Positions 2,439 through 42,639 are shown, counted from the stretch's first letter. The stretch is 64,000 bases of DNA from Stegostoma tigrinum (GCF_030684315.1 NC_081370.1:34366728-34430727), one strand, 5' to 3'. Translations and numbers: made by a program. Notes: a model not told the origin generated them from the sequence alone.

Positions 2439-2759
2439 CTGAACCAGAGGTCCATTTGCCCACAGATGACATTGCTGTTCAGAATGGAACAGAGAGATCT
2501 GTGAGTTGTACTGTTAAAGGATTTTACCCTCAGAAACTTGATCTCACCTGGGAAAAGGAAACAACAAAGGGAATTGAGGAACTAAAAGATAATTTCTGCA
2601 CTGGTGCACTAATTTCCATGGATAATGGAACTTTCAGTGTTTCTAGCAGACTATGGATTGAGCCAACATTGAAAGATAATGGTAATGTATACAGGTGTAA
2701 TGTGAAACACCGCTCGCGCCCCGAAGGTATTATCAGCACAACTCGACTCACAGTTACAG
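2439..2759 (+). CDS. NCR3LG1-like: Gene A extracellular Ig C1 exon (321 nt)
   Basis: tgtag|CT..ACAG|gtatgt. Motifs SCTVKGFYP, LTW, NGTFSVSSRL and YRCNVKH, plus two NGT sequons. Confidence 0.95.
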
Positions 2760-5700
2760 GTATGTTCTCTTTGCAAGATATTTTTTACTCTGCTATTGTT
2801 AAAACACACACATTTAACGAATTTATGCCCTTTGTCTAATATTGAATTTCAACTGAAATATCCATCTGACTTAAATTAGGAGTTCATTCTTTTCCTAGTA
2901 CGCAACTAAATTATTTTTGCCTACAATAATGACTATTAAGAGTAACTAGATATGACATTTCAAAATCTCAGAATGTGATCCAACTGTACCCATGTTCAAA
3001 AGCTGTTAGAGTTACATGTGAATTGCTTTTAGAATCAGTTTTAATGATTTTTATGAAAATGCTAGCGAAAATAATTAAGTAGAGTTATGTTGAAGTTGAC
3101 TGTACAGTGCAGTCTGCTTATGTTCATATGGTTGATAGTGTCCAAACTAAATCGAAAATATTGGGGAAAAAATGAGAAAAGGTAAAGGGGAAAATAGGCA
3201 ATCATCGGTACACAAACCTGATTAATTATATTATCAGGTAGGTCTATGATTAATGTTGTAGTTCCATTCCTGACATCACTACTTTAGATGTAACAACTTG
3301 AATTTAACCATGGATTTCCATAGCACTCAGTGTTAAAGAGAGAGTTGGGTTCCTTTGGACACCTTTAGACTCCCAAAACATTTATTTGCCCAGAAAAACC
3401 AATATATTGAAATATTGTGCCATACACATGGTACACTGTGCATTCCGAGCCAAAAGAGTGTACAAAATAATGTAAATCACTGACTATAACAAGTACTGTG
3501 TAAATTCACATTTATTTATTTTAGTAAAGGGCCCCAGAATTGTTGAACTGTTTTATTTCTCCAGATGGGTTTATTTGCAACACTTCATGCCAAGTTTGGT
3601 ATTGGTGATACCAAATGAACATTAATGGTTTCAATCTAGATTCCTTAATTTCAAAACTGTCCAGTACAGTCTACTGGGGTGCAGCTCTGAAACAATAGTT
3701 TCAGTCATCATGTACGTAAATTATAACAGTGTTGATGTAACTTCATTTCCTTGATAATGAGTGTGACATTCTGTGATTATCCTCTCTACCCTAGAAGTTT
3801 TGTTTTCCTTCAAATGATACAAAAGTAGCTGGTGAGTACATACCATGAGGTCGGTGGATTCCTCAGCATGAGGACTGGGCTTTTTCTTTTCCTCTGATCA
3901 ACCTGTTTAGTTCATCTATGGTACACATCTAGAGTAAGTGGGAGATAAACTTGGGTCTCCTGGCTCAGGTGTAGACCCTACCACTGAATTGCCAGAGCTC
4001 CACATGAGCCATTTTTAACTTTTTTTAACTTCCTGCCCGAAGCCAGCGTGATTTTGTTTTCAAGGGAGGACATTAACTGTACAGGACTGTTATTTCAAAC
4101 TCTTTTAAAACTTTATTGTGTTTAATTATCTTAAATTATTGTTTAATACATCATAGCAAAGCTGTGACAGTTCGCATGGGGTAGTCTATTTTTTGTGGTA
4201 ATTTTAAATTCATTGCTTCTTTACTTGTGTTGCAAATTTCAGAGCCTGAGAGAGATTCTTCAGTTGGAACAGTTGTTTGGAGCGTATTTGGTACATTCAT
4301 TATTTGTGCAGCTTTATTGTTTATTGCATGGTTCTACTGGAGAAATAAAAAAGGTACCATATCCACTTGTGAATATATTATTCCTGTAATTCTTTTAGTT
4401 ACTTCTTGCATGTATTACCTATAGAAGTCCTTGTGCTCTTTAAGTCAAGTCCCCATAGTCTTCGGTCCGCCTCCCCCTCTCTCCCTATTTATTCCAGTTC
4501 CCTCTCCCCATCCCCCTCTCTGATGAAGGGTCTAGGCCCGAAACGTCAGCTTTTGTGCTCCTGAGATGCTGCTTGGCCTGCTGTGTTCATCCAGCCTCAC
4601 ATTTTATTATCTTGGAATTCTCCAGCATCTGCGGTTCCCATTATCTCTCTCCCCATAGTCTCGGATGACCATGCTCTCATTAGGGGGAGATTGACTGTTG
4701 GTGGATTAATCTGAGGGTCACCACACCTCAGAAGAGGGGAGTGGTTGAGAAAGAGGAGCTTTCATAGTAACTTAAGGCGATTCAGTAATTGAACCACACT
4801 GTTGGCATCCCATTGCATCACAAACCAGCTTTCAAGCCAACTGAGCTGTTTGTGCTCCTATTTTGGTGTAATATCAGAACTTGGAGCTTACGCTTTAGCT
4901 GCGATTGGCAATCCAGTCACAAATAGTTTTGTTAGTAGTTTTTCTATTCGAACACTCATTGCACATTCACATCATCGTTGATTCATTTCAGTTTTTTTTT
5001 CTAATTTACTCAGGCTTTGTGGATGTTGCTGTCTGAGCCAGCATTTATTGCCTATTTCTAGTTATTTTTGAACCACTGCAGCCCATTTAGTGCTAGTACA
5101 CCCACAATGCTGTTAGGGAAGAAAGTTCTTGGATTTTAGCCTGGCAACGGTAAAGGAGTGGTGAGAGATGCCCAAAGCTGAGTCGTGAGTGGCTTGGAGG
5201 GGGACTTGCAGGTGGTGATTTTCCCATGTATCTGCTGCCCTTGTTCTTCAAAATGGTAGTGATTGTGGATATCAAAGGCGCTGCCCAAGGATGATTGGTG
5301 AATTTCTGAAAGGTATCTTGTAGGTGGTGCCCACTACTGCTACTGAGTGCCTACAGTGGAGAGACTGAACGTTTGTAGATGTATTGCCAAGGCTGCTTGA
5401 TGTGGATCATGTCAAGATTCTGAAGGAGGTGGAGATAAATTGTCCACTTGGCACTTCTGGCTGAAAATGGCAGCAAATGCTTTACTTTTTTTTTTGCAAG
5501 GACTTGTTGGGCCCCAACTGTTGAGGATGGGGACATTTTCTGATCATTCTTCTTCCAGTGAGTGGATGTGGCAGGGCTGCAGAGCTTAGATCTGATCCAT
5601 TGTTTGTGGGATCACTTAGCTCTGTCTATTACTTGCTGCTTATGCTGTTTAGCATGAAGCTAGTCCTGTTCTGTAGCTTCACCAGCGTAATTCCTCATTT

Positions 5701-8700
5701 TAAGATGTGCTAGGTGCTGCTCCGGGCTTATCCTCCTGCACACTCCATTGAAGCCGAGGTGATCCCGTGGCTTGATGGTAATGGTAGAGCGGGGGTCAGG
5801 GTGGAGATATGCTGGGCTGTGGGTTGCAGGTTGTTTTGGAGTACAGTTCGGCTGCCGTTGATGGCCCACAATGCCTCACGGGTGCCCAGTCTTGAGTTGG
5901 TAGATCTGTTCAAAATCTGTTCCGTTTAGTGCGGTGATTGAGAATATCCTCAATAATGCACTATGTCTAGTAAGACTTTGTCTTCAAAGTCAATGCAGCG
6001 TTCACTCCTATGGATACAGTCATGGACAGAATGATCTGTGGCAGTCACATTGATGAGGATGACATCAACTATGCTTTTCCCATTTTTTGGTCCCCTTACC
6101 AACCATGCTGCAGACCCAGTCTGGCAACTATTTCCTTTAGGACTTGGCCAGCTCAGTTAGTGGAGCTGCTGCTGAGCCATTCTTAGCGATGGATGTCGAA
6201 GTCTCCCCACCCTGAATACATTATGTGCCTTTGCCACCCTCAATGCTTCCTTCAAATACCGTTCAAATGGATATATCCTGATGCATCAGTTCGGGTGGGG
6301 ATAGGGGATACAGGGTATGTGTTTGATCTGATGACATGAGTTACACGGACGTCAAGTCAATGTTGAGGAGACAAAGGGCAGCTCTGTTGTGACTATCTAC
6401 CATTGTGCTGCATGGGACAGGACATATTCAGGGATGGTGATGGTGCTGCCTGGGATGTTGTGTATGACTATGTAAGGTTGACTAGTCTGTGGGATAGTTC
6501 TCTCAATTTTGACACTAGCTTCCATGTGTTCATAAGGGGTGCTTTACAGGAATGACAAGTTTGTTGCTGTCATTTCCAGTGCTCTTGATAATGTCAGGCA
6601 TTCCATTCAGTTTAATTCCTTTTTACCTTTCTAGCAGTTAATATAGCTGAGTGTCTTGCTCGGCCATTTCAGAGGGCAGTTAAGAGTCAACTGCATTGCT
6701 TTGGGTCTGGAGTTGCATGTAGGCCAGACCAGGTAGTGACAGCAGTTTCCTCCCTCAAGGATATTAGTGAGCATGATGGGTTTTCCTGACAATTTCACTG
6801 TAATCCTTTGACTTTCAATTCCAAAATTTTAACAGTAGGATTTGAACCTCGGTTCCCAGAATATCACCTGAATCTCTGAATTAGTAATCCAGTGATAATA
6901 CTGCTGGGCCATCACCCTCCCACGTTCACATGTCTTCATAGAATCCCTACAGTGTGGAAACACGCTGTTTGGCCCAACAAGTCCACACTGACCCTTGGAG
7001 CATCCCACCCAGACCCACCCCCCCTAAACACTGTGGGCAATTTAGCATGGCCAATCCACCTAGCCTGCGCATCTTTCGACTTTGGGAGGAAACCGGACCA
7101 CCCAGAGGAAACCCACATAGACTTGGGGAGAATGTGCAAACTCCATACAGACAGTCGCCCAAGGTTGGAATCGAACCCAGGTCCCCAGTGCTCTGAGGCT
7201 GCCGTGCTAACCACTGAGCCACCATGCCTTCTACATTTGGTAATCAGGTATTGATTAAGAGCAATTTTTGTGTTTCTTTTCAAATTTTTCTTTTAATTAA
7301 ATTTATTTAAGCATAGTAAAGCTAAAATTATAATGTGGTTACAGTGCAGAAGGAGGCTGTTTGATTAGTTAAATCCACACTGGCTGTCTTTCAGAATAAC
7401 ACAGCTGGTTTAATTCTGTCTTTTCCCTGTTGCTCCCATAATCTCTTTTTCAAGTGCTTATAAATCAAATTGTCTTTTGCAAGACTTGATTGAATCCTTT
7501 TAAAGAAGTGCATTCCATCTCAAGAGCATTTGCTGCTTAAAAAGATTTGTCCTTATTTCGGCTGTGCTTTTTTTTTGCCATGAATTTTCACTCTTTGATT
7601 CTTGACCCCTCCACTAGTGGGAACAGCGTCCATCTGCCATGTTTGGACCCTCGTGATTTTAAATGGGGGCTGTATCGAATCTCTTTCTAACCTGCTCTGC
7701 TCTGACAAGGACAAGCCTAGCTTCTCCAATTTTTTTGATGTAATTGAAATCTTTCAGCCCTGGAACCATTCCTCACTTCTGTATCCTCTTAATAAAATGT
7801 GAAACTTCAGACTTCCCTGCATTATCTTTCTCAGCCACTCGCCCCACCTACCATTCCAGACTGCCGAAATCTTCTTGCAGTGTATCAGCAGCCTTGTCAC
7901 AGTGCACTAAATTGCTACATTGTATGTCGTCTAAGGTTTTTGAAATTTTTTTCCCATTCACCCAAGTCCAAGTCATTAATATGTCTCACATAAATCAGCA
8001 GTCTATAGTACAAATGCTTAAGAGCATTAGAATTAGGAACAGAGCCATTTGGCACCATATAGTTGATCTGATTGTACCTTTAACTCCACTGAATCCCTGA
8101 GAAACCCCATTGTATAATCTGGCTCCAGCCTGAGAAACAATCATTCGCTGCCTCTGCCTGTTTCCTGTCACTCAACCAATCTCATATCCACACTGCCAGC
8201 GTCCTGTTCATTTCAAGGGCTTCACATTTGCCGACAAGTTTATTAAGTGACGCTTCTTTGAAGACCTCTTGAACATCCACATAGATTGTACAACTACATT
8301 ACCTTCATCAATCCTCTCAGTTGTGCCTTCAAATTAAGCCTTGAGCAAAACTGTGCTGGCTTTCCTGAATACATTTATGCATGTTCAACTGATGGAGACT
8401 TGATTTTGAGAGAAAATTAACAAGGCTTCCACACCACTGAGGTTAAAAAGACAAGCTTTCGTCTGCTGGATTTATCCTCATTATTTTTTTTGAACAGGTT
8501 TTGTCATTCTTCAGTTCCCTGGCATCTCCCTCGTGTCCCTGGGAACAAAAGTACCCAGGCTGGTGCAGTTTTCTCACGCATATATACACTGTGGATTTCA
8601 AAATGAAAACAATTTAATCAGTGTCTTGGGCTAGCACTTATTGCCTATTTCTAGTTGCTCTTGAAAGGAGTGCAGTGGCCTACCTTCTTGAACTGCCGCA

Positions 8701-11700
8701 GTCCATTTGGTGCAGGTTACCCAATTTTTTAAAAAAATTTAGATGTATAGAGAACAATTTATTAGTTTTGTATGTGTGCAGTAGTCAGTTTCTTAGTAAT
8801 TTAAAAGAAAAATGATATTCAAAAGCTTTTAAATCTTGACTGCTGGTGTCCATGTATCTTCCAAAAAGGCTCATTTTGAGAGAAAAGTAAAATACTGCAG
8901 GTACTGAAAATATGAAATTATAAGCTGATAATGCTGGAAAACCTCAGCAGACCCAGCCGCGTTCTACTGAATGAATATTGACCAGAAGCATTGATTGTGT
9001 TTTCTCTCTATGGTTGCTGGTGCCCTACAGAGTTTTTATTACTCTTAATTTTAAGAAGCTCGTCAAAAGCTCGCAATTGGCCCAGTTAGTAGAGGTTGTA
9101 GTAATGATTAATTAAATCTTGGTATGCAACCAGCTTCTAGCACAAAAGACAGAATTTTTGCTTGCTACCTCTGAAATTAAGTGCTATGTGACAATGGCTA
9201 TTGGCAACTTTCTCTACTCAGCAGAGGTTAAGGACCTAAAGTAGTCTATTAATTGCCACTTGGGGGCATTACCCCACCAGTTCCTTGATCACCTACCTCC
9301 CCAGGAAGGAAGAACAGTGGCTAGTCTCCCAACTAGAAAACCGGGGTGACTGACCTGCCAGAGGGTCACCTCTGAAATTTCTCTGCCATTTGACAACAAC
9401 ATCCCCATCCCCCAAAGTCTTGCCAATTACCACCTCCTCCACAAATGTCCACATCTTGTGAGAAGACGATAAAAGACACAACTTCTCATTGCTGGATCAC
9501 CTACAGAACAGATTTTGACCAACAGACACTGGGACTCAGGGACTCTGCTGCTCTTGCTCAGTTCTTAATGAATTGATTCTATGGCAATAGGGTGAGTTAT
9601 CTCACTGGTGTAGGTGATGTGTAAGCTGCTACCTAACGTATTCCCTTTGAGATCAAAAGGGGAAAATCCCAGCCAAGGTTTCCATTGGATGTAATTTGCA
9701 TGTTTTTCATCTGTTGAGAAAAGATTGGATTGGATTGAGAAAAGACAGCGTAAACCTTTCTGAAACTCTCACTTATGTATCCTGGTGTTTGCTAATGTCA
9801 CTGGACTAGTAATCCAGAAGCCCAGGCTATTGCTTTGGTAAACATTAGTTCAAGTCCCATCACAGCAACTATTGCAGTTAAATTCAATTAATAAATCCAG
9901 AATTGAAAGTTACACGACTCCAGACGTGCGCCAGTTTACTTGAATCTCAACCGCTGTCTGAAATGACTGAACAAGTCCATCCATTCAAGGGAAATTCATA
10001 TGGGCAACAAGTGTTTGCTTTGCCAGTGACCTCCTCATCCTATGAAAGAATAATTTAAAAAAAACACAGTCATTGACTTGCATTTGCACTCTGCCTGCAG
10101 CCTAGCAAGGAAATGAAACAGAGTAAGCAAATAAGAACATTTCCATTGTTAAATTTTAATCTTCTTTATTAGTTCCTCCAGAAATTATTGAAATGAAACC
10201 CCCTTCCATCCTTCACCATTTGGAGGAAGATTTCATCGATTACCACGTCTCTGGATTTAGACCTTCGAAGATTCGCGTTGTTTTAATCTTGAAGAGGAGA
10301 GAGAATGGAAATGGAAAAAAAATTTTAGAATGGCACAGCACAGATGGGAATAATGTAAATAATGTACAAACAATGTGCCCAAATAATCAAGATGAAGTGC
10401 AGCTTTTTGTAAATAATTGTGAAGAGGATAGATCTTTTTCACCTTTGGAACCAACTTTATCCTGTAACAGTAATAGAACTTTCAAGTTAAAGGGCACAGT
10501 CAAAGTCTGTCCTGATGTGAAAAGTGATAATGGGGCTGAATTAATTCTTGAAGTTTATCATGATGCTGTTTCCCAAGTCAAGTCAATAGCCATAAGACTG
10601 GATGTTAAAGCAGGTAAACCATGTACACGTTTTTTTCACAATTTTATTTATGCTTCATGAATCCATTCTGTTTTTTTTTGTAAACTTGTGTATTTGTCCA
10701 TACAATGTAATTGTATTGTTAGTAGTGGTCGTGTAGTTTTGCCACCTGGAGTCTGTCTACATTATAGAAAATGCAATCTGTGATATTAGTATTTTCTTGT
10801 TCTTATTAATACGTGGAAATTCTTTCAGTTTCAAGAGATGACTTCTTTATTTTGTTTCCCTTTTCTAAAGTCCCGCCAAAAATTTCAAACATTGTGGTGC
10901 CACTTCGTGTCTGTCATAATGAGCCTGCAGCCTTGGTTTGTTCAATAATTGGATTTAAACCAAATTCTCTTCAAATCACATGGCAACAAATCAGGAAGGA
11001 TAATAAAGTGGAACTTGTTCGATTTCATCAGGGCAGGACTGTCTTTGCTACTAACAATGGTAACAAGTGCAAGTATCATCATCAAATCAGTGAAGTAGAA
11101 TATGAAGATAAATCCTATGGTCTTACCAGTGCCCTAGTTATTTTGCCAGCAATACCGCAAGACCAAGAAACAAGGTATATCTGTGAGGTACAACATGATG
11201 AGTCTTACACTATCAAGCAGAGAGATACAATTCTGCGAATTACAGGTATGTCATTCTTCTGACATCCCTTGTGTAGGAATATGGATTAAATGTGTTAACT
11301 GATGCTATTTTCTCATTTTTGTCTGTTAAAAGCCTACGGTATGTTTAATCTTTTCATTTCTTTTTCAGCCCCACCAAAATTGGACAGGATAGTGTGTAAT
11401 GTAGAAAAACCAGTTGCAGGAGAGTGCATAACTTTGCAGTGTCAAATACATTCTTTTTATCCTCCTGGAATAGTAATAACATGGTTGAAACAAGGTAAAA
11501 AAGTGACAGAAAAATTTGAACAAAGTGAGCCCACACTGGGAATTGATGGACTCTATCGCTTGACCACTAGTTTAAAGGTTACACTGAGCAGAACTGATGT
11601 TGGGAAGAAATATGCTTGCCAAGTAAGCCATGAAAGTCTAGAACAGCCATTGGAAGTTGACTGGAAGGTTGATCATTTCAGTAAGTAACTATTGTTAAAT

Positions 11701-14700
11701 CATCATGCAGAAACTATAAGACAATGAAACTTGCTAAATCATAGAATCCCAACAGTGTTTGGCCTGCTGACTCCATAGCAACCCTCCAAAGAACATCCCA
11801 CCTAGATCCACCCCTCCCAACCTTATCCCTGTAACCCTGCATTTCCCTTGACTAATTCACATAACCAGCAAATTCTGGGCAATATGAGCAATTTAACATG
11901 GCCAGACCATCCAACCTGCACATCTGTGGACTTTGGGAGGAAACTGGAGCACCTGGAAGAAACCCACATAGTTGGGGAGAATGTGCAAATTCCACACAGA
12001 CATTTCCCTGAGGGTGGAATCGAACCTGGATCCCCGGTGCTGTGAGGCAGCAGTGCTAACTACTGGAGCTCTGTGCCATGTGAATAATCTCCAAATTAAA
12101 ATAAATTACCAAGATTCCACTTTTTTTGTAGCTTTACATTGGTACAAATCAGAACCACCAAATTAAACATGAATTAGCAGATACGTGAAAAGGTAAATTT
12201 GCTTTATATAGTTAATACAACAAGATACAGCATATGCAACCACAAATGTTTGCTTCACTTATTGCTGAAAAGTTTTTTTATTCACATAGGGTGGTTCAGG
12301 AGTCCTATCTGACAATAACGTTCACCTCCAGGGTTCACAGATACAAGTATCATCACTATTAACTCACACCCCTACAGTATCTTCTGTTCCTTGCATCATT
12401 GACATTCCTGAGTGTGTAGCTTTCAAAATTTCTTTTCAGTTGAACAACCAAAAACAAGCTGGTTCACGGTTTGGCCACTTCTGGGAAAACACCAAGCTCT
12501 CTGGCATCTCTGAGCTATCTTCATTGAAATAATTTCAGTACTTAAGCTCTTGTGTCCTAAAGCAGCACAGCACATACAAACATCAATTGGTACTCCTCGG
12601 GTGCCTGCCTTTCTGACATATACTAGGTTATATCACAGTTCTGGAAGAATTGTCATACCTAATTTAGTTTTTATAACACCTTCACAAAACTAACCAAGAT
12701 GCCACCGTTACAAAATCCAACCTCCAAGTATGTGGAAAATTAGGCTTGAATGGCCTCACGATATTCAATAACAAAGTTGCTGGAAAAGCTCAGCAGGTCT
12801 GGCAGCATCTGTGAAGGAAAAAACAGAGTTAGCGTTTCAGGTCCTGTGACCCCTCCTCAGCTCTGAGGAAGGGTCATCGGACCCGAAACGCTAACCCTAT
12901 CTTCTCCTTCACAGATGCTGCCAGACCTGCTGAGCTTTTCTAGCAACTTTGTTTTTGTTCCTGATTTACAGCATTGGCAGTTCTTTCAGTTTTTATCACG
13001 CTATTCAATGTTCTGTCCCAAAATTGATGAGTTGCCAATCCCATCTGAAGCTGAAGCACTGGCTGCAGCTTTATGCATGTATGAGGGTGCGGGGGGTGGA
13101 ATGAGGGGCAGTGAAATGCAACACTTTGTTCAAGAAAACAACATGTGACAATTTATTAAGGGATACTTGAGATCTTTAAAAATAGTGACATTTTCATTAA
13201 TGCAAACTCAAAACACTCTATTTTGTTTGTCTGCAGTATTAGCACCAAAGGTAACAGAAGTTACAGTTGATCCTGTTCACCCAAAGGTGGGAGAACTTGT
13301 AACCCTTTCCTGTAAAGCTTACGATTTCTTCCCAAAAGACAACGAAATATTCTGGCTGAAAGGGTTTGAGAGAACTAAAGATGGAGTTGAAATGGATGAC
13401 ACTGTATTCGATAGCTCGTCTAGTTTGTACTCTCGACGGTCCAAAAGGACATTCAGTCCAACTGACATGGACCATGGAAAAGAGTTCAAAATGCAGATTC
13501 TTCACACTGGGACTTCAAATAAGCCTGTCTCATCCAGTCATGTTTTGAAACTATTTGGTAAGCCTGGTTCCCAACAAGATTTCAGAGTAACAATTACAGA
13601 ATGTTGAAACGTTATTTAGAATGGACGGATGGTTCAAGTTCATTAAGTTGACTAATGTTTTGTCAGGAAGGTTGATTAGTCCATTAAGTTAGGTCGAATG
13701 ATCCATTTCATTGAATCGCCGCAATGTGGAAGCTGGCCATTTGGTCCATCATGTCCGTACCCACCCTTCCGCCCAAACTCTACTCGAACACTGTAACCCT
13801 GCATTTCACATAGCTAATCCCCATAGCCTGCACGTTCCTGGACACTGTGGGCAGTTTAGCATGGCAGTCCGCCTAACCTGCACCACTTTGGACTGCAGGA
13901 GGAAACTGGAGTACCCGGAGGAAACCCAGATGTGGAGAGAATGTGTAAACTCCACACAGTCATCCAAGGCTGGAATTGAATCTGGGTCCCTGGTGCTATG
14001 AGGCACTAGTGCTAACCACTGAGCTACTGTGCCATAGAATATATCACAAGATTTCACTTTTGCGAAAACCAACAAAGCAAATTTTATACGGAACAGGTTA
14101 AACAAGCAAACTTGACATAATGTTTTATAACTATGTATATTGTGCATTCCAGTTTACTTCTTATTGCACCTAAGAATTATCTTCTGAGATTAATCAATCT
14201 TTAAAGTTATTTACTTATGTAGGGACCTCTGACAGGTAAGCCTCAGCTTTCAGGAAATGTCGTCTTGGTTTCAGCTATTCTCCCCAATAAAACCTTAATT
14301 TACCTTCTCTTGACTGAGGAATCTGCTTTTCATTACTTAGAAGTTAAACTGTTCTTCCCTTTTGTAACACAAAACTTCCAAGGGCCATTGTCGGCTTTCC
14401 ATTCATTTCAAGCTGCACAATCTTCCATCTTCTGTTCTCCCATAAAGTCCAAATTGAGATTAAGCCATCCCCGCTCCAAAATACATTAATGATCTTATTA
14501 GTTTTCACTCTACGTAGAGTGCAGATCTGTCTGTCATCTGTTGTGACTATCATCTCTTAGCGAGCTATGTACCACATGAAATCCAATCTGCAACTGGCAA
14601 AGAGTCAGTTTAAATGAAACCAGAAAATCTTGCCAAGAACCACCAATCTGTATAACAATTTAACATGTTCAGGATTAGTGATACCTTATTTAATGTTTAT

Positions 14701-17700
14701 TCTTTAATGTGAATGAGTTTCACAATTTTCCATCATTCACTAAATACTTTTAAATTAATTTCATTCTAAATCCCAGAACAAAGATGTCTCCAAGACTTCC
14801 CAAACTGAGGAATACAAAAATCACATTTCCATGGTTTTTTTAACGCCATAAAATCATCTGCTGTGTTATGATTTTACTTCTCTAACTGTTAACCTCAAAT
14901 AAAAATAGATTCATAGAATCCTTACAGTGCAGAAGGAGGTCATTCAGCCCATCAAATCTGCACTGACTGTCCCTCATTAGACTTCTTGCCTCATTCTGCT
15001 ACACCTATCGCTCAGACCCATCTCACATTCTACCAGCTGTTTCTACTGTTTGTCAAATGCTGCAGTACCCTCTCTGACAGGAAGACGACATTGCTTTTAT
15101 TTTGAAGATGAATTCAACACCGGCTGGAGAGTGTTTTCACTGACATTCCTTGTTTGCCAGTGACCTCCAAATCCATTTTAGTGGCTCCTTTGGCCCTGAT
15201 TTGTGGTATTCCATCTTGCTTCTGGTTTGCTAATCGCAACTTAAACTTCTTGTATCTTAAAGATTTTGACAGTTCATTATTTTCTTTGGAATGGCCAACA
15301 TTATGTATCTGTTTCACTGACCAAAGTTTGGTGGGAAAGGCTGGGGAGACAGATGTTCAAATATTTGTTGATGATGCTTAAACCTGATGCTATAAGGTTT
15401 GTAATCACTTGCGGTTTCATTCAATTTCAACAGGAATACCATATGTTGAAGATATCAAACTTGTTCCACCAGAAGCCAAATATGGTAGTGACCTTACTAT
15501 GACATGCCGTGTCACTAACTTTCTCCCACAAGACATTAATGCAGCTTGGCAACAAGATGGCAACCAGGTAGTCAAGGAAATCTCAGTTAAAGGACCTGTG
15601 AAGGAGAAAGATGGATGCTCTTCTGTGACATTTCAGTTACAAATAAGACCAACTGCACTAAATTTTAATCAAGAATTTTCTTGCCAAGTGAGCCATGTTA
15701 AATTAAAGGCTCCAGTTACAAAAAAGACAGTTTTAATACTTCCAGGTAGGTTTTACCATGACTCTTTTCTTTATAAAATTTGAAAAGTTCCAAGTCATTT
15801 TTAATTGTGGTTGACTAGGTCAAAGAGAATTAATTTGATTTCATCTTTAGAGGTAGGAGAATGGCATGAAACAAACTATTTCAAGATAAATGACCGCGAG
15901 CAAATTAGAATTCAATAACTCTTAAGAATTCAACAGATTGTAGAAGAAACCTTAACTGGTGATACATAAAAGAAGGATTTTTGATTTGAGATCATTATGT
16001 TCGCTGTTTTAAAAATATATCCAAATAAATTCAGCTTTTGAAGTAATTACATTGATAGAAACTAGATCGCAGAAGTTCTGAACATTTTTGTTTTTGCCTC
16101 AGTTTGTCAGTCTTCTAAAAAACTTTTAATATGGATCTTTCTAGTACAAGTTGGACAAAATAGTTAATATTATGATTTTTGAATCCAGTTTTGTTTTGGT
16201 CTGTCTTTTCTGTGACAGTACTTTGTGTGAGTTATAATGCAGTGAACTTTATTCTTTGGGAGCTCCTTTGATATTTATAGGTAAAAATGTCTCTCACTGC
16301 TGCTGTAAAGTGGTATATTGAAATACCCTACCACTATCTTTACTTATAAGGTCAGTGTTGTTTTCAAAAGAATCTTTTGAATATGATCATTAGTTTATCT
16401 TTCATATATTTTGTGTACATCGCAGACTATAAATGTATGTTTAGTTTCATTTTATATTGTTCATCTTAAAGATTAATGGCTGTGGAACAAAATTCAATCA
16501 TTCATAAATCTTTTATTTGTTTTTCAGCTTTGTCTCCTACCTTGTCTTCTATTAAGCTTGATCCAAATTCCTTTGAAGTTAATCAGAAACTAACATTCAG
16601 TGTTACATTGACAAAATATGCTCCTGCTGCAGTCGAAATAAAGTGGTTTAAAAACGAGACACGTTCAAATATGATTCACAAACCTGTGGAAATTGCTAGT
16701 GATGGTCTTTGCTCATCAGTTACAAGCACAGAATTTGTTGCAACTGAGAAGGATGATGAGTGTGTCATCAGATGTGAAGTGTTTCATCCAGCAACAAAAG
16801 AAATTCAAGAGAAAACTTTCACATTATTCCTTAAAGGTGAGTGCCATTTTGTTAGAGATGGGTTGAGAACAAAGCATTTCATCACAGTCACAAACAAAAA
16901 CAGAAATTGCTGGAAAAGCTCAGTGGGTCTGGCAGCACATGTGGAGAGAAATCAGAGTTAATGTTTTGGGTCTAGTGACCCTTCCACGGAACTGTGGACA
17001 GGCCACTGAACCCAAAATGTTAACTCTGATTTCTCTCCACAGATGCTGCCCGACCAGCTGAGATTTTCCAGCAATTTTTGGTTTTGTTTCTAATTTACAG
17101 CATCTGCAGTTCTTTTGGTTTTCATTTCATTAAAATGTTATAATTGTCATGTTGAGTTTCTTGAATGCAATGTATTCATTTGAATGTTTACTTGATGTTG
17201 AAACTTTGTCGATAAACAGATTTTATTGCTGTGCTGAGAATAGTTAATTTGTGATGACTTCAGATTCATTACTCTTAAAAGAGCTACTTAATACTCCAAT
17301 ATTCTAAGGATGTACTACATTTAACTAACTGTTTCTGTGCTCAGGTATTAAAAATGAAGAATCGCCTTATTCAGATCTATTGAAAGATGAAGGTAAAGTG
17401 TTCATCTTGAAAGTTTTTGTTTTGTGCATGTTTGGTTTTAATCCATATTGATGTCAGTGTAGGGTATCAGACTATGCAGAAAATAATGTAGATATAACAT
17501 TTCAGATGGAGAGGAGTGCTGTCTTCATTTCTGGCTATTAGAATGGATCTAATGGGTGATCCTTTTAAAGTGAAACAGGGATGATATGATGTAATCCAGC
17601 ATCCCATTTTCATCATCACTGCCCTAATTACACACAATTGTACCTGTGTTCAAATAGAATTACTGACTAGGGTTGCGAGCTGCTGGGTAAAAGACAAAAA

Positions 17701-20700
17701 CGCCAAACACAAATATTCATATTTCTCCCGATATTATGGATAGAGTATAGTTTGCTGTTCCTAATGCTCTATTCTTTGTAATTTTCCATGAATCTATCAT
17801 GTCAGAAAAGATACGTCATATTTTTAATTTTGTAAGAATTCTATAAGGGAAAGGAAATCAGGTTAGTGAGTGTACAGTGGAAACCCATGACATGTACTCA
17901 CCTGTGGAAGTAATGACCTTTTCCATGTTTAGCCAAGAATGAGAAGGAAATGCACAACTTCAATGCCACCATTGTTTTAATCAAAACTTGTATAGTGTGT
18001 ACATGCATGTACCTGTAGTGATCCAGGTGCTACCTAATTAACAAGGAGGTGGGAGTTAGCTTGATCTTGTACTAATGTGAACTAATCTGTCCAATTTGTT
18101 GAGACATCCCAATCTGACCTAGTCCCATTTGCCAGTGTTTGGTCTGTATCGCTCTAAACCCTTCTTATTCATGTACCCATCCAGATGTTTTTTAAATGTT
18201 TTAATTATAATCACTTACACCACTTCCTCTGGGAGCTCATTCCATATACACACCACCATCTGTGTGAAAAAATTTCCCTTTGGGTCCTTTTTAAATCATT
18301 CCCCTCTCACCTTAAACCTTTGCCCTCTAGTTAGGTGCTCCCCCAACTTGGGAAAACAACCTAATCTATTCACCGTACCCATGCCTGTCATGATCTTATA
18401 AACCTCCGTAAATTGACCCCTCAGCCTTTGATGCTCCAGGGAAAATAGCCCTAGCCTATTAACCTCTTCCCTATGACTCAAACCCACCAGCCCCAGCAAC
18501 ATCCTTGTAAGTCTTTTCTGCACCATGTCAAGTTTAACAACATCTTTCCTACATGAAGGCCACCAGAATAGTACACAGTATTCTGAAAGTGGACTCAGCA
18601 ATGTCCTATGCAGCTGCAGTGTGACATCCCACTCCTACACTCAAGTGCTCTGACCAATGAAGGCAAGCATGCCAAATGCCTTCTTCACTACCCCATCTAC
18701 CTGCCACTCCAGTTTCAAGGAACTATGCACCAGCATGCTTAGGTCTCTTATTCAGTTTACAGGGCCCTACCATTAAGTGTATACGTCCTGCCCTGGTTTG
18801 GCTTACCCAAACTGCAACACCTCACATTTATCTAAATTAAACTCCGTGTGCCACACCTCACCCCATTTGATCAAGGTCCCATTGTGCTCTGAGATAACGT
18901 TCACTGTCCATTACACCACCAATTTTGGTATAATCTCAAACTTTCTGATCATACCTCCTATATTCACATCCAAATCATTGCTATAAATTACAAAAAGCAG
19001 TGGACCCAGCACCGATCTTTGCGGCACATCGCTGATCATAGGCGTCCAGTCTGAAAAGCAACTCTCTATCACCATCCTCTGTCTCCCAGCTTCAAGCCAA
19101 TTTTGTATCCGATTGACTAACTCATCCTGGTTCCCATGTGATCTAACCTTACTAATCAGTCTACTGTGCAGAACCTTGCAAATGCTTTGCTGAAGTCACA
19201 ACAACATTTACCAATCTGTTTTCATCAATCTTCTTTGTCACCACTTCATAAAACTCATTCAAGTCAGTGGATCATGATCCCCCATGCACAAAGCCATGTT
19301 GACTATCCCTAATCAGTCCTAGCCTTTCCAAGTGCATCTAAATTCTATTTCTCAGAATCCCCTCCAACAACTTACCCACCACTAAGGTAAAGCTCACTGG
19401 TCTGTAATTCCCTGGCTTTTATTTACAGTTTTTCTTAAACAATGGCACCTTTTTAGCCAACCTCCAGTCTTCCTGCACCTCTCCCGTGGCTGTCGATGAT
19501 GTACACATTTCAGCAAGGGACCCAGCAATCACTTCCCTAGCTTCCCACAGAGTTCTGGGAAATACCTGATCAGGTCCCAGGGACTTATCCAACTTTTATA
19601 TGTTTTAGTACCTCCAACACCACCTCTTCTGTAACATGAACACTTGTCAAAGACATCACTGTTTACCTCCTCAAGTTTCTTGGCTTCCATGACCTTCTGC
19701 ACAATAAACAATGATGTAAGATATTCACTTTGCATCTCGCCCGTCTCCTGTGGTTTCACACACAGCCAGTTTGATTGTTAAGGGACCCTATCCTCTCCCT
19801 AGTTACTCTTTTTCCATTAATATGCTTGTAGAATCTCTTTGGATTCTCCTTAACCTTATTTGTAAAAGCTGCATTATGTCCCCTCTTTGCCCTTCTGATT
19901 TCCCTCTTAAGTATATTCCTTCTGCCTTTATACTCTAATGATTCACTCATTCCCAGCTGTCTATACTGGATATATACTGCGTTCTTTTTCTTGACCAGAA
20001 CCTCAATTTCTCTGGTCACCCAGCATTCCCTACTCTTACCAGCCTTGCCCTTCAGACTAACAGGAACATAGTATCTCTGAAATCATGTTATTTCATTTTT
20101 AAAGGCCTCCCACTTCCAAAATGTCCCTTTACCTTCGAATAGCCTCGCTCAATCAACATTTGAAAGTTCCTGTCTAATACTGTCAAAATTGACCTTACTC
20201 CAGTTAGAACTTTTAACTTTATGATTAATTCTATCTTTTTCATAACTATTTTAAAGCTAGTATAATTATGCTCACTTGTTCCAAAGTGGTCCCCGACTGA
20301 TTCCCCTGCTTTGCCCTGCCTTATTTCCCACCAGAAGGGCAAGTATTGCTCCTTTTCTAGTATATACATCCACCTCCTGAATAAGAAAGTTATCCTGTAC
20401 ACACTTAACAAATTCCTCCCCATCTAAGCCCTTAACAGCCCCAGTCTGTGTTTGGAAAGTTCAAATCTCCTTTTATTACAACCCTATTACTATTACAGAT
20501 ATCGGATATTTCCTTCTCCATTTCCTGCTGACTGTTGAGGTCCCGATAATGCGATCCCAACAAGTTGATCATCCCATTCTTTTTTAAAGTTCAACCCGTA
20601 TACATCACTGCCGGTCTCCCAGGAATATCCTCCCTAAGTACAACTGTAATGTTATCCCTCACCAAAAACACCCCCACCCACCACTTCTCTTGTCCCCATT

Positions 20701-23700
20701 TCAGTCCTTCCTATAGCATCTCTACCCAGGATATTGAGGTGCCAGTCCTGTCCATCCCTGAGCTGCATTTCTATAATAGCTGTAATATCCCAGTCCCATC
20801 TTCCCAACTATGCTCTGAGTTTGTCTGCCTTACAAGTCAGTCTTCTTGCATTGAAGTAAATGCAGCTTAATTTATCAGCTTGGCAGTAAATCTCTGATTC
20901 GGACCTGCTGTAGGCTCCCTGGTTTGGTACTGTATTCATTATCTCTTTGTTCCCTGTATGCCTCTGCCTAAGTCTTTTGGTCTGTACATCCTTTACTTAC
21001 TATGATCTGCCTGTATGTCATGACAGATCAAATGAGTAGCAAGAGATGCATATCTCCCTGGAAGCCACTGATTAATTGATTGATTAATTTATTGTCACGT
21101 GTACCGAAATACAGTGAAAATTTCTGTTTATGAGCTATACAGGCAGATCATAGTAAGCACGGGATGTACAGATTAAAAATAGTTAGATAGAGGCATACGT
21201 GTTACAATGCACAGAGTGTGTGCTAGGCAAGATTAGTTTTAACAAGATCAGCATTATTTGAGGCTAGAGAGTCCGTTCTTCAGTCCAATAGCGGCTGGGA
21301 AGAAGCTGTTCCTGAACTTGCTCGTACGTGTGTTCAGGCTTCTGTATCTTCTGCCTGATGGAAGAGGTTGTATGAGTTTATTAACGGGGTGTGATGGGTC
21401 TTTGATGTAGGCACCCTCTCTGCAGCAGCGAGCTGTGTAAATGGAGTCCACAGATGGAATGCTGGCTTCCGTGATGGTCTGGGATATGCACACCACCTTC
21501 TGCAGTTTCTTACAGTCCCGAGCAGAGCAGTTGCCATACCAGGATGGACATTCTTGCCGTTGAGGGAGTGCAGCGTAGGTTCACGAGGTCAATTCCTGGA
21601 ATGGTGGGATTAGCATATGTTGAAAGATTGGAGCGACTGGGCTTGTATACTCTTGAGTTTAGAAGGATGAGCGGGGATCTGATTGAGACGTATAAGATTA
21701 ATAAGCGGTTGGACACTCTGGAGGCAGCCCAGCTCGTCCTCTCCCCCCACTGCATCCCAAAACCAGCCCAGCTTGCCCTGGCCTCCCTAACCTGTTCTTC
21801 CTCTCGCCTATCCCCTCCTCCCACCTCTAGCCGCACCTCCATTTCCTACCTACTAACCTCATCCCGCCTCCTTGACCTGTCCGTCCTCCCTGGACTGACC
21901 TATCCCCTTCCCTACCTCCCCACTTATACTCTCCTCTCCACCTATCTTCTTTTCTCTCCATCTTCGGTCCGCCTCCCCCTCTCTCCCTATTTATTTCAGA
22001 ACCCTCTCCCCATCCCTGTCTCTGATGAAGGGTCTAGGCCCAAAATGTCAGCTTTTGAGCTCCTGAGATGCTGCTTGGCCTGCTGTGTTCATCCAACTTC
22101 ACACTTTGTTATCTTGGATTCTCCAGCATCTGTAGTTCCCATTATCTCTATCTCCCTTTTGTCGTTTGACTCATTGTTGTTTGATGTCCGTCCCACTACT
22201 GTGGTGTCGTCAGTGAACTTGTATATGGCATTCATTCAGAAGTTGGCAACACAGTTCTCCAGTTCACCCATCATCTGCACAATTCTTCTGAACTTGTCTT
22301 ATATCTACACACAATATAAAACTAAACTGCTAGATTATTCTGATTTTGAGCAAATGGTCAAGGAATCCTGATTCATATGCCAGTAACTTCTCACTGCATG
22401 TTCATTGCTCAATACACCCCCTTCACGTAGTCTCTGATGGATGTCTCTGCCCTGATGAATGGGAGAGAGCGAATGAATGCTTGTTTCTGCACTACAGTCT
22501 GGTTGCACTGAAATCATACTTGAAGGTATATCTAGACAAATAAAACAAATAGACTCTTTGAAATGGTACTCATCAGTTTTAGCGGAAACAGTAGTATGGA
22601 TTTCATGTTGTGCTTCTAACTTGTTGGCTGTATCACCTAAAGTGCTTTAGTTAGTATCTATATAGCTACATTCACATTGAAATGGCATATTTCAGTTTTT
22701 GGGACTTAACTGACTACTGATGCTTTGTCCCAATTTTAAAGTCTTTAACACAATTAGTGGAAGCTATGTTATGTAGTAGATAGCCATGAATGCACTATCT
22801 TCTTGGATCTTCCTGACCTGGAGGTGACTGAAGCATTTTGTGCCATGAAGTGACCTTTTGCTAAATAGATGATTTCATGCTAACTATCCTCCATATCTTC
22901 TGCAGCTCTCTTTTTGTCACTTCCCAAAGTGTATTATGTTCCATAATTGCTTCAAATTTAGTAAAAATTTCTCATGTTGGAAACATGCCCATTTTGATGT
23001 GTAACCCATGATTTTTGCCCAGGTGAATACATTCTAGTCATGTGGCTTTTAACTATTCATCTGGTGTGAGGTAACAACATTTTAATCTCACACTCAGTTT
23101 TCCCAGTTTGAAGAACAGGATTCCTTCTTATATTTTGATTCTTGAATATTTTTGTTTCTTCTCTCATCCATGACTACGCCTTCATTCTTCCATGAACTCC
23201 ATGTCTTCTGTATTGGGACAGTAGATAGCTAGATGTTCTCTCACTAATGTTATGGTTTTTATTTTCATCTTGAACATTAAGGCCCATAATTAATGCAGGT
23301 GTGTTGCTGACTGTTGGTAAAGTAGCTTAGTATTCGTAGAATGTTGGAAGTAGTTTAGGTTAGAATCAAAAGACCCCTTGTGTAGGAGTGCAGAGTGTTC
23401 GCTGGAACTACTGAATATCATTGTTTTCCTTTTGGTAATTAAAGTAAAATCTATTTATTTGTTATATTATTAAGAGTTTTACCGATCTCAATTTTTATTC
23501 CACCCTGCAATTTTACAGGGGTATCACAGATAACTTGCGAGACACCACATCCTCAAGCTGGCCAACCTGTAACGATTTCCTGCACTGTTACGGGATCTTC
23601 TTTAGAAGACACACACATCACTTGGTACAAAGATATTTATCCTTTAGATGAAACCAGCTGCATTAAAAAGAAACCATTTGAAACTGGTGTAGGTTTCACC

Positions 23701-23811
23701 ACTGCATTAACTTTCACACCAAAGCAAGAAGATGATAATTGTCAGTTCCAAGTTAATATTATCACTGAGATGGACCCAGTCAGCAGATATTTCAAACTGA
23801 AATTAAGTTGA
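2439..23811 (+). CDS. NCR3LG1-like: Gene A (5'-partial, 10 exons in window): B7-H6-like receptor, [leader-V outside window]-C1-TM-(Ig)x6-ITIM-Ig-stop
   Basis: Ten AG..GT-bounded phase-1 exons join into one open frame ending at TGA 23809-23811. Exon order and sizes mirror gene B. Confidence 0.88.
4243..4353 (+). CDS. NCR3LG1-like: Gene A transmembrane exon (111 nt)
   Basis: tttcag|AG..AAAG|gtacca. Encodes EPERDSSVGTVVWSVFGTFIICAALLFIAWFYWRNKK, a hydrophobic helix followed by a basic stop-transfer. Confidence 0.92.
4462..4649 (+). mobile_element. Penelope-like terminal fragment with 12-bp target-site duplication
   Basis: TCCCCATAGTCT at 4450-4461 and 4650-4661; the body matches the 3' end of the 28585-31401 element. 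Confidence 0.85.
4520..4547 (+). ncRNA. Minimal type I hammerhead ribozyme motif within the Penelope-like terminal repeat
   Basis: CTGATGA-A-GGG(TCTAGG)CCC-GAAA-CG-TC: conserved core, short stem II and palindromic ACGT stem III. Confidence 0.7.
5010..6920 (-). mobile_element. Patchwork of old LINE/SINE remnants
   Basis: Segments recur at ~8620, ~38400-38580, ~44880-45050 and ~62390-62700; family not assigned. Confidence 0.5.
6938..7227 (-). mobile_element. tRNA-derived V-SINE (HE1-like)
   Basis: A box TGGCTCAGTGG, B box GGTTCGATTCC and the V-domain GGAGTTTGCACATTCTCCCC..GGTTTCCTCCC. Confidence 0.85.
10173..10613 (+). CDS. Gene A post-TM Ig domain 1 (441 nt; atypical, long insert, no canonical Cys)
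   Basis: tttattag|TT..GCAG|gtaaac. Encodes VPPEIIE..IDYHVSGFRP..LILEVYH. Homologous to 56925-57356. Confidence 0.88.
10871..11245 (+). CDS. Gene A post-TM Ig C1-like domain 2 (375 nt)
   Basis: ctaaag|TC..ACAG|gtatgt. Motifs LVCSIIGFKP, ITW and YICEVQH. Confidence 0.93.
11369..11680 (+). CDS. Gene A post-TM Ig C1 domain 3 (312 nt)
   Basis: ttttcag|CC..TTCA|gtaagt. Motifs LQCQIHSFYP, ITW, DGLY and YACQVSHESL. Confidence 0.95.
11740..12077 (-). mobile_element. V-SINE (HE1-like)
   Basis: Same B box and V-domain as 6938-7227. Confidence 0.8.
12771..12952. repeat. Palindromic element made of two inverted Penelope-type termini (second family)
   Basis: Arms of about 90 bp around 12860, with a CTGAGGA..GAAA motif. 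A related palindrome lies at ~16890-17120. Confidence 0.75.
13237..13557 (+). CDS. Gene A post-TM Ig C1-like domain 4 (321 nt; F-strand Cys replaced by Met)
   Basis: ctgcag|TA..TTTG|gtaagc. Motifs LSCKAYDFFP, IFW and FKMQILH. Confidence 0.92.
13710..14033 (-). mobile_element. V-SINE (HE1-like)
   Basis: tRNA-like head and V-domain. Confidence 0.78.
15434..15745 (+). CDS. Gene A post-TM Ig C1 domain 5 (312 nt)
   Basis: caacag|GA..CCAG|gtaggt. Motifs MTCRVTNFLP, AAW and FSCQVSH. Confidence 0.93.
16528..16836 (+). CDS. Gene A post-TM Ig C1-like domain 6 (309 nt; B-strand Cys replaced by Val)
   Basis: ttttcag|CT..AAAG|gtgagt. Motifs FSVTLTKYAP, IKW and IRCEVFHP. Confidence 0.92.
17345..17392 (+). 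CDS. Gene A 48-nt micro-exon encoding GIKNEESPYSDLLKDE (ITIM consensus SPYSDL)
   Basis: gtttctgtgctcag|GT..GAAG|gtaaag. Phase 1-1 and frame-preserving; not in the ORF track. Confidence 0.72.
18110..20880 (-). mobile_element. Degenerate CR1-like LINE (ORF2 remnants, internal deletions)
   Basis: Minus-strand remnants EYCVLFWWPSCRKDVVKL..QKRLTRML, KENPKRFYKHI and GDHFGTSEHN. Confidence 0.85.
21080..21543 (-). mobile_element. Rex1/Babar-like LINE 3' end (continues at ~22150-22255)
   Basis: DPSHP..LPSGRRYRSLNTRTSKFRNSFFP motif. Confidence 0.7.
21544..22148 (+). mobile_element. CR1 fragment fused to a Penelope-like 3' end, nested in the Rex1-like LINE
   Basis: LAVEGVQRRFTRSIPGM..DLIETYK up to ~21725, followed by the Penelope terminal repeat. 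Confidence 0.75.
23519..23811 (+). CDS. Gene A terminal exon, post-TM Ig domain 7 with stop codon
   Basis: ttttacag|GG. Translates GVSQITCETPHPQAGQPVTISCTVTGSSLEDTHITWYKD..FTTALTFTPKQEDDNCQFQVNII..VSRYFKLKLS*. Found manually; not in the ORF track. Confidence 0.87.
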
Positions 23812-27900: not shown

Positions 27901-28584
27901 CCAGTGCAATGTACAACACGGACTGCCTACTCCATGACTGTCCTACAATGTTGACCCTGTTTGTACATGGAATCTCCCTGCTACAGCTGCTGCTGGTAAA
28001 CCCTTTGACAGATACATCCTTCACAGAGGGAGCTAACAATTAAGAATATTGAATGGGGATGGACAAACGTGTCACCATTGGCCAATGTCAGGTGTATGCA
28101 CCTTTTCCCCAGATGCCTATTCAGGGAGCAATGTACGTAGCCATAAAGTACTGCTGGAGGTCTTCAGATGCATTTACTGTCTACATAGAAATTAACAAAC
28201 TCCTGACAGTTCACACCAAAAACATTTATGCAGAAAGTTATATTGCCTTCTACCTTTTATTATATAAGCCTCTAAAATACCTTCAGTAGGTTTTCTTCAC
28301 GCTCTCCCTCCCATTGAGTCATTCTACAGTCTCTGGCTCCCCAGTTGTAGAGAGGGCCAGCCAGAAGTGAAGCCCTTTGGCCGTAGAATGTTGGTGGGAT
28401 AACCACAGGGCCAAGTGTCTGGATGGGTCTGACGTACTGAAGGTCGCCTTTTCTAGAGGCAGCTTGAACCTCTTAGGGTCAGAGAGGTCAAGTAGGATTT
28501 TGGCTTCAGAAGCTCAGAGACAGGAAGTGTTTCAGAGGCGAGACACATTTTCTCTACGAGAAAGCAGGAAATATCTTAGTAGGA

Positions 28585-41326: not shown

Positions 41327-41464
41327 CAGTTCTTGCTATCTCTACGTTTTTAGGTTGTTCTGGTTGGGGCGTTTTGATTTAATAGATACAAATTCAGTAT
41401 TCGTACCCAAGAGTAGTTCTAATGAGTTTGCATATTTTCTTTTTAAAACGGATATGGGTGCTCA

Positions 41465-42629: not shown

Positions 42630-42639
42630 AACGTGCTCA

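Follow-up and report, generated by a model that had tools for sequence, protein, structure and literature searches.

The 64,000-nt stretch of DNA analysed here (the window) comes from the zebra shark, Stegostoma tigrinum, and contains zero N. It holds two tandem genes, A and B, both on the + strand, and otherwise only retroelement remnants, which make up the intergenic space. Both genes are related to B7-H6 (NCR3LG1) and encode an ectodomain of immunoglobulin (Ig) V and C1 domains, a transmembrane (TM) segment and, after it, a series of further Ig-fold exons, which we number D1 to D7. An original prediction, made from the sequence alone, had described gene A as a B7-H6-like receptor with seven Ig C1-like domains on the cytoplasmic side of the membrane. 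Every exon that it claimed for gene A was found where it had been placed, with good splice sites, and the roughly 803 amino acids expected after the TM segment correspond to residues 289-1091 of the RefSeq protein LOC125459327.

The exons of both genes are listed in Table 1. The leader and V exons of gene A lie outside the window, on its upstream side, and gene B runs past the window end after D3. Paralogue B does supply the N-terminus, as had been proposed (leader-V-C1-TM, ending in KYLKK), together with post-TM exons D1-D3 inside the window. A leader-like hydrophobic open stretch at 45558-45615 (…MNYLLIILILIV…), just 5' of the gene B V exon, was rejected as intron; the family-type leader is a separate exon. 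The ten gene A exons are all phase 1-1, with polypyrimidine-AG acceptors and GT donors, and because of this uniform phase, in-frame continuation alone is no evidence that they form one chain. The TM-D1 intron of gene A measures 5.8 kb, and the TM exon donors of both genes are without a G at position +5.

Table 1. Exons of genes A and B in the 64,000-nt window, with the supporting evidence for each (KD, Kyte-Doolittle hydropathy; AF2, AlphaFold2; HMM, hidden Markov model).
Feature	Position	Strand	Evidence and remarks
Gene A ectodomain Ig C1	2439-2759	+	Pfam C1-set 47.5 bits; 100% to LOC125459327 residues 145-251
Gene A stalk, TM and basic stop-transfer, end ..YWRNKK	4243-4353	+	phase 1-1 cassette; mean KD 2.48; AF2 helix 266-286; donor gtacca
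Gene A D1, divergent C1-like Ig	10173-10613	+	Pfam none; family HMM E 4e-15, full length; AF2 Ig fold
Gene A D2, C1-set with canonical Cys pair	10871-11245	+	Pfam C1-set 35.6 bits
Gene A D3, C1-set with canonical Cys pair	11369-11680	+	Pfam 65 bits; PDB phmmer E 4.5e-25 to IgA1 heavy chain
Gene A D4, C1-set, F-strand Cys replaced by Met	13237-13557	+	Pfam 33.5 bits
Gene A D5, C1-set, Cys pair intact in gene A	15434-15745	+	Pfam 52 bits
Gene A D6, C1-like, B-strand Cys replaced by Val	16528-16836	+	Pfam C1-set 20.7 bits (cut-off 21)
Gene A micro-exon, 48 nt, acidic linker with Tyr motif SPYSDL (IKNEESPYSDLLKDE)	17345-17392	+	in LOC125459327 (100%) and nurse-shark B7H6 (80%)
Gene A D7, divergent Ig, terminal exon (…YFKLKLS*), stop 23809-23811	23519-23811	+	Pfam Ig matches below cut-off; family HMM E 2e-20; 100% to LOC125459327 C-terminus
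Gene B leader (signal peptide)	42840-42912	+	ATG, phase-1 gtaaag donor; tblastn with Rhincodon B-type protein (P0101) residues 1-37
Gene B Ig V, B7-H6-like	45616-45972	+	Pfam V-set; closest PDB relatives human NCR3LG1 6yjp/3pv6/4zso
Gene B ectodomain C1	47297-47617	+	Pfam C1-set 42.4 bits; 40% identity to gene A C1
Gene B stalk and TM, end ..KYLKK	55581-55697	+	RNA-like contig cover, joint to 56925; donor gtaaca
Gene B D1	56925-57356	+	exon-only cover, joints on both sides; 27% identity to gene A D1
Gene B D2	60170-60547	+	joint 57356 to 60170, GT..AG
Gene B D3	61532-61843	+	tblastn with Rhincodon P0101, 89.5%; splice sites

Transcript joints were sought in 6,000 nt of paralogue B (window positions 55500-61499), onto which contig sets were mapped. 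RNA-like contigs from three runs in two studies carry two GT..AG joints, 55697 to 56925 (TM to D1), which is the join that had been predicted, and 57356 to 60170 (D1 to D2). These contigs cover exons only, are about 95-97% identical to the window and belong to a close relative. In all three runs they cover the TM exon of gene B as 55579/55581-55695, with the GT..AG joint leading to 56923/56925. Contigs of 2.4 kb run through TM-D1-D2 and then continue for about 1.5 kb more, and one of 904 nt holds 356 nt 5' of the TM piece, a length that the C1 exon and some of V would give. The runs had been tagged 'RNA?' by guess, and their spliced nature was read from the contigs themselves: as the cover is confined to exons and the joints are canonical, the contig sets represent spliced RNA. 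A DNA run from the organism itself covers the same stretch of gene B continuously, with zero such joints.

Database proteins describe the same chain. The S. tigrinum RefSeq protein LOC125459327 (P0083), 1091 amino acids long, is 100% identical to every gene A exon, micro-exon and split codons included. A nurse-shark protein of 1092 amino acids, deposited as 'natural killer cell cytotoxicity receptor 3 ligand (B7H6)' (QTT61906.1), is collinear with gene A, again with the micro-exon, at 76-86% identity per domain. The Callorhinchus UniProt entry V9K7L7, which carries the TM segment and D1-D7 and differs at several residues from genome-derived models, presumably originates from polyA transcripts of that species. 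The Callorhinchus genome study assembled transcripts de novo from polyA RNA and deposited them (PMC3964593). A HMMER scan with the D1 exon returned 37 cluster representatives, many of them 950-1200 amino acids long with D1 starting near residue 290, right after the TM segment. The TM exon and D1-D7 belong to one gene, with one pre-mRNA of the form leader-V-C1-TM-D1...D7, and the claim that seven Ig-fold exons and a micro-exon are read as a single chain is borne out alike by the RNA joints of paralogue B and by the RefSeq, nurse-shark and Callorhinchus proteins.

The chain could conversely be an artefact of gene modelling, if a short B7-H6 gene ended at the TM segment and D1-D7 formed a separate downstream gene with an unrecognised leader. 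Phase symmetry would put any such join in frame, and leader-like chance open reading frames do exist in the TM-D1 introns. A scan of these introns in both genes, for leader-like exons and for an extra TM segment, returned only chance-level AT-rich open reading frames with poor donors, none of them common to A and B, in agreement with the prediction that no new signal-peptide exon stands between TM and D1. Decisive are the direct TM-to-D1 GT..AG joints in three RNA-like runs; with V9K7L7 and the nurse-shark deposit, each of which covers both parts, they refute the two-gene reading, and we reject the separate downstream gene as having almost no chance of being real.

The ectodomain was predicted to be B7-H6-like, and this description holds. 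In a phmmer search of the PDB, the V exon of gene B finds human NCR3LG1 as its closest solved relative (E 2.6e-13; 6yjp/3pv6/4zso at about 3e-13), ahead of CD276 (1.4e-7) and BTN1A1 (2.4e-5), and on these scores the V domain is nearer to B7-H6 than to other B7 members. The ectodomain C1 domains of A and B both exceed the Pfam C1-set (PF07654) gathering cut-off of 21 bits, and their top PDB matches are Ig heavy-chain constant domains. In the tail, D2, D3, D4 and D5 lie above the same cut-off, D6 and D7 (20.0 bits) slightly under it, and D1 is without a match. Beyond IgA1, D3 also matches the alpha3 domain of the major histocompatibility complex (MHC), beta2-microglobulin, shark UrIg2 and SIRP-alpha. 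An HMM trained on the family matches all seven domains, D1 and D7 from end to end.

Structure models agree with this picture. Built on the family alignment, the AF2 model of D1 is an Ig sandwich with a predicted local distance difference test (pLDDT) score of 82 and a disordered insertion of about 25-27 residues; Foldseek relates it with probability 1.0 to beta2-microglobulin, MHC (class II beta2 among them) and the C domain of B7-H6, and it also matched UrIg2. The full-length AF2 model of LOC125459327 (mean pLDDT 81.7) shows nine beta-sandwiches, with domains at about 80-94, and one helix; confidence is low only in the leader, the stalk, the D1 loop and residues 981-993. In gene A, the C-strand Trp is present in D2-D7 and missing from D1, and a His two residues past the F-strand Cys position, near-invariant across the family, is found in D1-D6. 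The canonical B-F Cys pair occurs in D2, D3 and D5 only, with D1 being without both cysteines. Of the seven Ig C1-like domains originally described, the Ig part stands for all seven, each of which is modelled with the Ig beta-sandwich fold; the C1-like label is solid for D2-D6, and D1 (without a Pfam match) and D7 are divergent.

The architecture is widespread. Members of the family come from over 25 species, with chimaera and amphibians at the two ends of the range; most are named 'uncharacterized', and RefSeq names those of Bombina and Ambystoma NCR3LG1. They occur in sharks (Stegostoma, Rhincodon, Ginglymostoma, Chiloscyllium, Hemiscyllium, Carcharodon, Cetorhinus, Mustelus, Scyliorhinus, Heterodontus, Heptranchias and Pristiophorus), in rays and skates (Pristis, Narcine, Amblyraja, Leucoraja, Rhinoraja, Hemitrygon, Hypanus and Mobula), in other fish (the chimaera Callorhinchus, bichirs, coelacanth and lungfish) and in amphibians (Ambystoma, Pleurodeles, Microcaecilia, Bombina, Leptodactylus and Phyllobates). 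The groups in which a search had been suggested, namely other chondrichthyans, basal bony fish and amphibians, thus all have it. In a FastTree domain tree, which is indicative only as its branch support values were left uninspected, D1 to D7 and the ectodomain C1 each form a clade of their own with cartilaginous and bony vertebrates inside it. Clades that follow domain position and span both lineages indicate that the seven-domain array predates the cartilaginous/bony split.

Gene A is the zebra-shark orthologue of nurse-shark B7H6 (NCR3LG1). Between Stegostoma and Ginglymostoma, identity is 91% in V, 84% in C1 and 75-87% in D1-D7; with its domains conserved to the same degree as V and C1, the tail is under selection and no decaying appendage. 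Gene B is an old tandem paralogue of gene A: at the DNA level dispersed repeats alone match between the two, and the relation is visible only at the protein level (27-40%). The nearest relative of gene B is a Rhincodon protein (91-97%), and Heterodontus and Pristis proteins are also close. The number of tail domains is plastic. In the Rhincodon B-type paralogue (P0101) the last domain is D6 and D7 is missing, Latimeria (P0042) and Erpetoichthys (P0021) have an extra D5-derived domain, and hemiscylliid sharks (P0091/P0092/P0094) have lost middle tail domains.

The top database match, a Heterodontus protein of 1515 amino acids (P0001), was considered as the window's own protein and rejected, as it belongs to a sister subfamily and has seven D1-type repeats. 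Members of this subfamily share the V-C1-TM head and have a tail of D1-type domains only, in 2-7 copies, zero of which carry the canonical cysteines; they include Heterodontus XP_067902348/7 (P0001/P0038), Callorhinchus P0002, Scyliorhinus torazame P0005 and Stegostoma LOC125459499 (P0013). Between the D1-type copies, the Heterodontus proteins have acidic linkers with the motif DDSDRSLL, which resembles the acidic-cluster/DXXLL sorting signals of cytosolic tails.

On which side of the membrane the array lies was judged by simple hydropathy and charge counts. In LOC125459327 a signal-like N-terminus is followed by V, C1 and a single helix, and beyond residue 300 the best 19-mer reaches a mean Kyte-Doolittle value of 1.23, compared with 2.48 for the TM segment. 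No second hydrophobic segment was found in full-length family members, the exceptions being two models that resemble fused genes, so the single TM segment of the original prediction stands. Across the family the TM exon is conserved, and its hydrophobic segment is 21-23 residues long with a mean Kyte-Doolittle value of 2.2-3.4. In 47 proteins, the 12 residues on each side of it have a net charge of -0.8 before and +2.2 after, the value after being the higher one in 87%. From the rules of topology (a cleavable leader, one hydrophobic helix and positive charge after it), we infer that the tail of the TM-containing isoform is in the cytosol.

To our knowledge, C1-set domains have so far been met only in extracellular or lumenal settings, in Ig, T-cell receptors, MHC, beta2-microglobulin, tapasin, SIRP and B7-H6. 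This, and the retained Cys pairs of D2 and D3, would suit an unconventional topology in which the segment is not a stop-transfer, or the protein is cleaved or re-inserted, leaving the array of the TM-containing protein lumenal or extracellular. Set against it are the strong hydrophobicity of the 21-23-residue segment, the acidic stalk before it, the Lys/Arg that follow it in 87% of the 47 proteins, its modelling as a single helix, and the full-length members that, bar the two fused-looking models, are without a second hydrophobic segment. We therefore consider such a topology very improbable.

The tail also carries marks that may reflect its compartment. Across the family, the canonical Cys pair is kept in 57 of 58 ectodomain C1 domains, in contrast to 0/71 for D1, 2/62 for D4, 6/42 for D5, 0/32 for D6 and 5/33 for D7. 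In place of the lost Cys stands Met, Val, Ile, Phe, Leu or Trp, with the loss falling on the same strand from sharks to amphibians. N-glycosylation sequons occur in the ectodomain at 1.02 per 100 residues (observed/expected 1.38) and after the TM segment at 0.59 (0.98), which is chance level; LOC125459327 has 3 in about 230 ectodomain residues and 2 in the 803 residues of the tail. Single conserved post-TM sequons were examined as evidence for the side of the membrane and set aside as not discriminating alone, one such column being common to 6/17 sequences and one to 4/12, compared with 10/17 for an ectodomain site. Taken together, the post-TM features of these sequences fit a reducing, non-glycosylating compartment, as would be expected of a cytosolic array.

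The TM exon is a phase-1/phase-1 cassette, and skipping it therefore yields an in-frame isoform that lacks the TM segment. RefSeq annotates, for five species, isoforms with an exact C1-to-D1 junction (Heterodontus XP_067902349, Hemitrygon XP_072905590, Bombina XP_053576614, Carcharodon LOC121283124 X2 and Cetorhinus LOC144684899 X2), and the S. torazame model GCB65803 has the same C1-D1 join in a sixth. Since the leader is kept and the anchor lost, secretion is predicted for the TM-less product, which would place the entire array outside the cell. Splicing would thus set the side of the membrane on which the array lies, cytosolic with the TM exon and secreted without it.

It is therefore conceivable that the array acts outside the cell. 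The selected product would then be a secreted nine-Ig B7-H6 serving as a decoy, an opsonin or an oligomerising stalk, and the tail of the TM isoform would be a functionless by-product tolerated in the cytosol. The exact C1-D1 joins in six species, the canonical Cys pairs of D2 and D3, the retained C1-set hallmarks (the Trp and the His after the F strand), the D2 sequon common to 6/17 sequences and the acidic surroundings of the micro-exon Tyr, which on general grounds could be a sulfation site, all speak for this. On the other hand, five of the seven domains lost a disulfide Cys before the shark/bony-fish split and never regained it, whereas the pair is kept in the ectodomain C1 and in all crystallised UrIg2 domains; sequons are not enriched after the TM segment; the TM exon is conserved across the whole family; and it is present in the dominant assembled transcript of three runs, in the X1 RefSeq isoforms, in V9K7L7 and in the nurse-shark deposit. 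An array selected for work outside the cell would explain the D2 and D3 cysteines better, and the ancient loss in the other five domains and the sequon level worse; we regard it as unlikely, though as the chief rival well worth keeping in view, and both readings may hold at once.

The micro-exon between D6 and D7 bears on the same question. AF2 gives residues 981-993 a pLDDT below 50, marking them as disordered, and the encoded Tyr motif takes the form SPYS[DN]L in orectolobiforms, V[HL]YENI in lamniforms, GTYENI in S. torazame, SYCNI in Heptranchias and IYSNI in Pristiophorus. The core Tyr-x-x-[LI] is thus kept in five shark orders (orectolobiform, lamniform, scyliorhinid, hexanchiform and pristiophoriform sharks). 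Its form is that of SH2- or adaptor-binding motifs, and the Tyr may become either phosphotyrosine or sulfotyrosine.

Several points weigh against a cytosolic, functional tail. The Cys pair is kept in D2 (56/60) and D3 (66/74) as strictly as in the ectodomain, which is most easily explained by a real disulfide formed in an oxidising compartment. Annotated TM-less isoforms range from shark to frog, and selection on the array may therefore concern a role outside the cell; these isoforms are known from annotation, the stretch used for RNA excluded the C1 exon, and minor variants are lost in contigs. The RNA joints come from the contigs of a relative and from paralogue B only, and contigs give no isoform ratios. 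Rays, chimaera and hemiscylliid sharks lack the Tyr motif and have acidic or Ser/Thr repeats in its place, and sulfated tyrosines of secreted proteins, too, are known to have acidic neighbours. Because the proteins compared are relatives, P values for sequons and charge are inflated, and a difference in amino-acid composition between ectodomain and tail was a small shift that was given no weight. The cytoplasmic placement in the original prediction is accordingly supported in part, by the single TM segment, the positive-inside flank and the Cys and sequon pattern, and is called into question by the D2 and D3 Cys pairs and the annotated TM-less isoforms.

On balance, the account that we think probable, with some reserve, is a cytosolic, functional seven-Ig tail on a B7-H6-type ligand, accompanied by a secreted form made by skipping the TM exon. 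The TM-containing protein is taken as the main product, on the evidence of the dominant contig, RefSeq X1, Callorhinchus and nurse shark. The V-C1 part would, by the rules of topology, be displayed outside the cell as an NKp30-type ligand, while the 803-residue tail with its seven C1-derived Ig domains would stay in the cytosol. There, the tail domains could fold without disulfides as a platform of beads on a string, because five of the seven long ago exchanged one core Cys for a hydrophobic residue. The disordered acidic Tyr motif between D6 and D7 would be exposed on this platform, which most likely would recruit cytosolic partners, be they SH2 or adaptor-type binders or the cytoskeleton. 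The recruited partners may control the trafficking, clustering or signalling of the surface ligand in the manner of the unrelated B30.2 domain of butyrophilins, and skipping of the TM exon would provide a second isoform with the array wholly outside the cell.

The remaining features of the window are repeats. Two decayed copies of one retroelement lie at about 28500-31400 (+) and 40200-43000 (-), the second adjoining the gene B leader exon. Weak reverse-transcriptase and GIY-YIG endonuclease matches (19.5 and 20.2 bits, below Pfam cut-offs) suggest a Penelope-like element, and a common tail peptide recurs at about 4460-4665, 22000-22370, 28530-28960 and 41050-41380. Within the D1-D2 intron of gene B, dispersed repeats at 57500-57900 and 58500-58900 have contig depths of 10^4-10^5 in each of the runs mapped, the RNA-like ones included; they are probably transcribed families of short or long interspersed nuclear elements (SINE/LINE).

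Comparison with known systems places the shark protein between several classes of molecule. Nurse-shark B7H6 resembles gene A in V, C1, TM, D1-D6, the micro-exon (SPYSxL) and D7, and differs from it in species. Human B7-H6/NCR3LG1 (PDB 3PV6, 4ZSO, 6YJP) is likewise a type I ligand of the form leader-IgV-IgC1-TM, but its tail is short and non-Ig, reported as gag-like with SH2-type, SH3-type and immunoreceptor tyrosine-based inhibitory motifs (ITIM), in contrast to the 803 amino acids and seven Ig domains of the shark. As a long tail is also present in the nurse-shark deposit, the short non-Ig tail is a mammalian feature and not one of the family. Butyrophilins (BTN3A1, BTN1A1; V-C-TM-B30.2) share with the shark protein a B7-related V-C head and a folded cytosolic beta-sandwich, and their B30.2 can govern the action of the ectodomain. 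Their cytosolic module is a single B30.2/SPRY domain, whereas the shark tail consists of Ig domains, with no B30.2 present.

Long arrays of related domains occur elsewhere. Titin, obscurin, filamin and the integrin beta4 tail (four FN3) are, like the shark tail, cytosolic strings of beta-sandwiches without structural disulfides, with integrin beta4 as an example of a type I membrane protein whose tail holds modules of this sort. Their modules are I-set, filamin-type or FN3, and none is C1-set or derived from antigen receptors or MHC. Shark UrIg2 (VJ, 9-11 C1 and a C-terminal TM segment; PDB 9DMX) is similar in being a long C1-set array in a non-rearranging shark gene of the Ig superfamily. Because its TM segment stands at the C-terminal end, the whole UrIg2 array is extracellular, and in the crystallised V-C1-C2-C3 fragment every Ig domain has its canonical disulfide (PMC12227049). 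The accessible literature contained nothing on post-TM Ig domains of B7-H6 or on C1-set cytoplasmic tails, though an earlier mention is possible; the few papers matched for intracellular Ig domains deal with muscle proteins and with an NLR from an echinoderm. The sequence itself is not new, since the gene models are public and one is deposited as B7H6.

Should the tail prove to be cytosolic, we know of no earlier case of a receptor or ligand bearing C1-set Ig domains on its cytoplasmic side. The array would then also offer natural examples of C1 domains folding in the absence of disulfides, a point of interest for intrabody and protein engineering. A TM cassette by which splicing decides between an inner and an outer location of one array would be unusual in itself. 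More tentatively, and with somewhat more doubt than conviction, we propose that the ancestral jawed-vertebrate B7-H6 may have had a seven-domain, largely disulfide-free cytosolic C1 array as a signalling or sensing tail that coupled the internal state of the cell to the display of a natural killer ligand, and that cartilaginous fish, basal bony fish and amphibians retained this tail over some 450 million years, the human protein being without it. If this is true, the ancestral NKp30 ligand would have been a far larger, two-sided molecule than the mammalian form, and for comparative immunology the binding partners of the array, a possible gating of ligand display comparable to that by B30.2, and the absence of the array from mammals would become testable questions.

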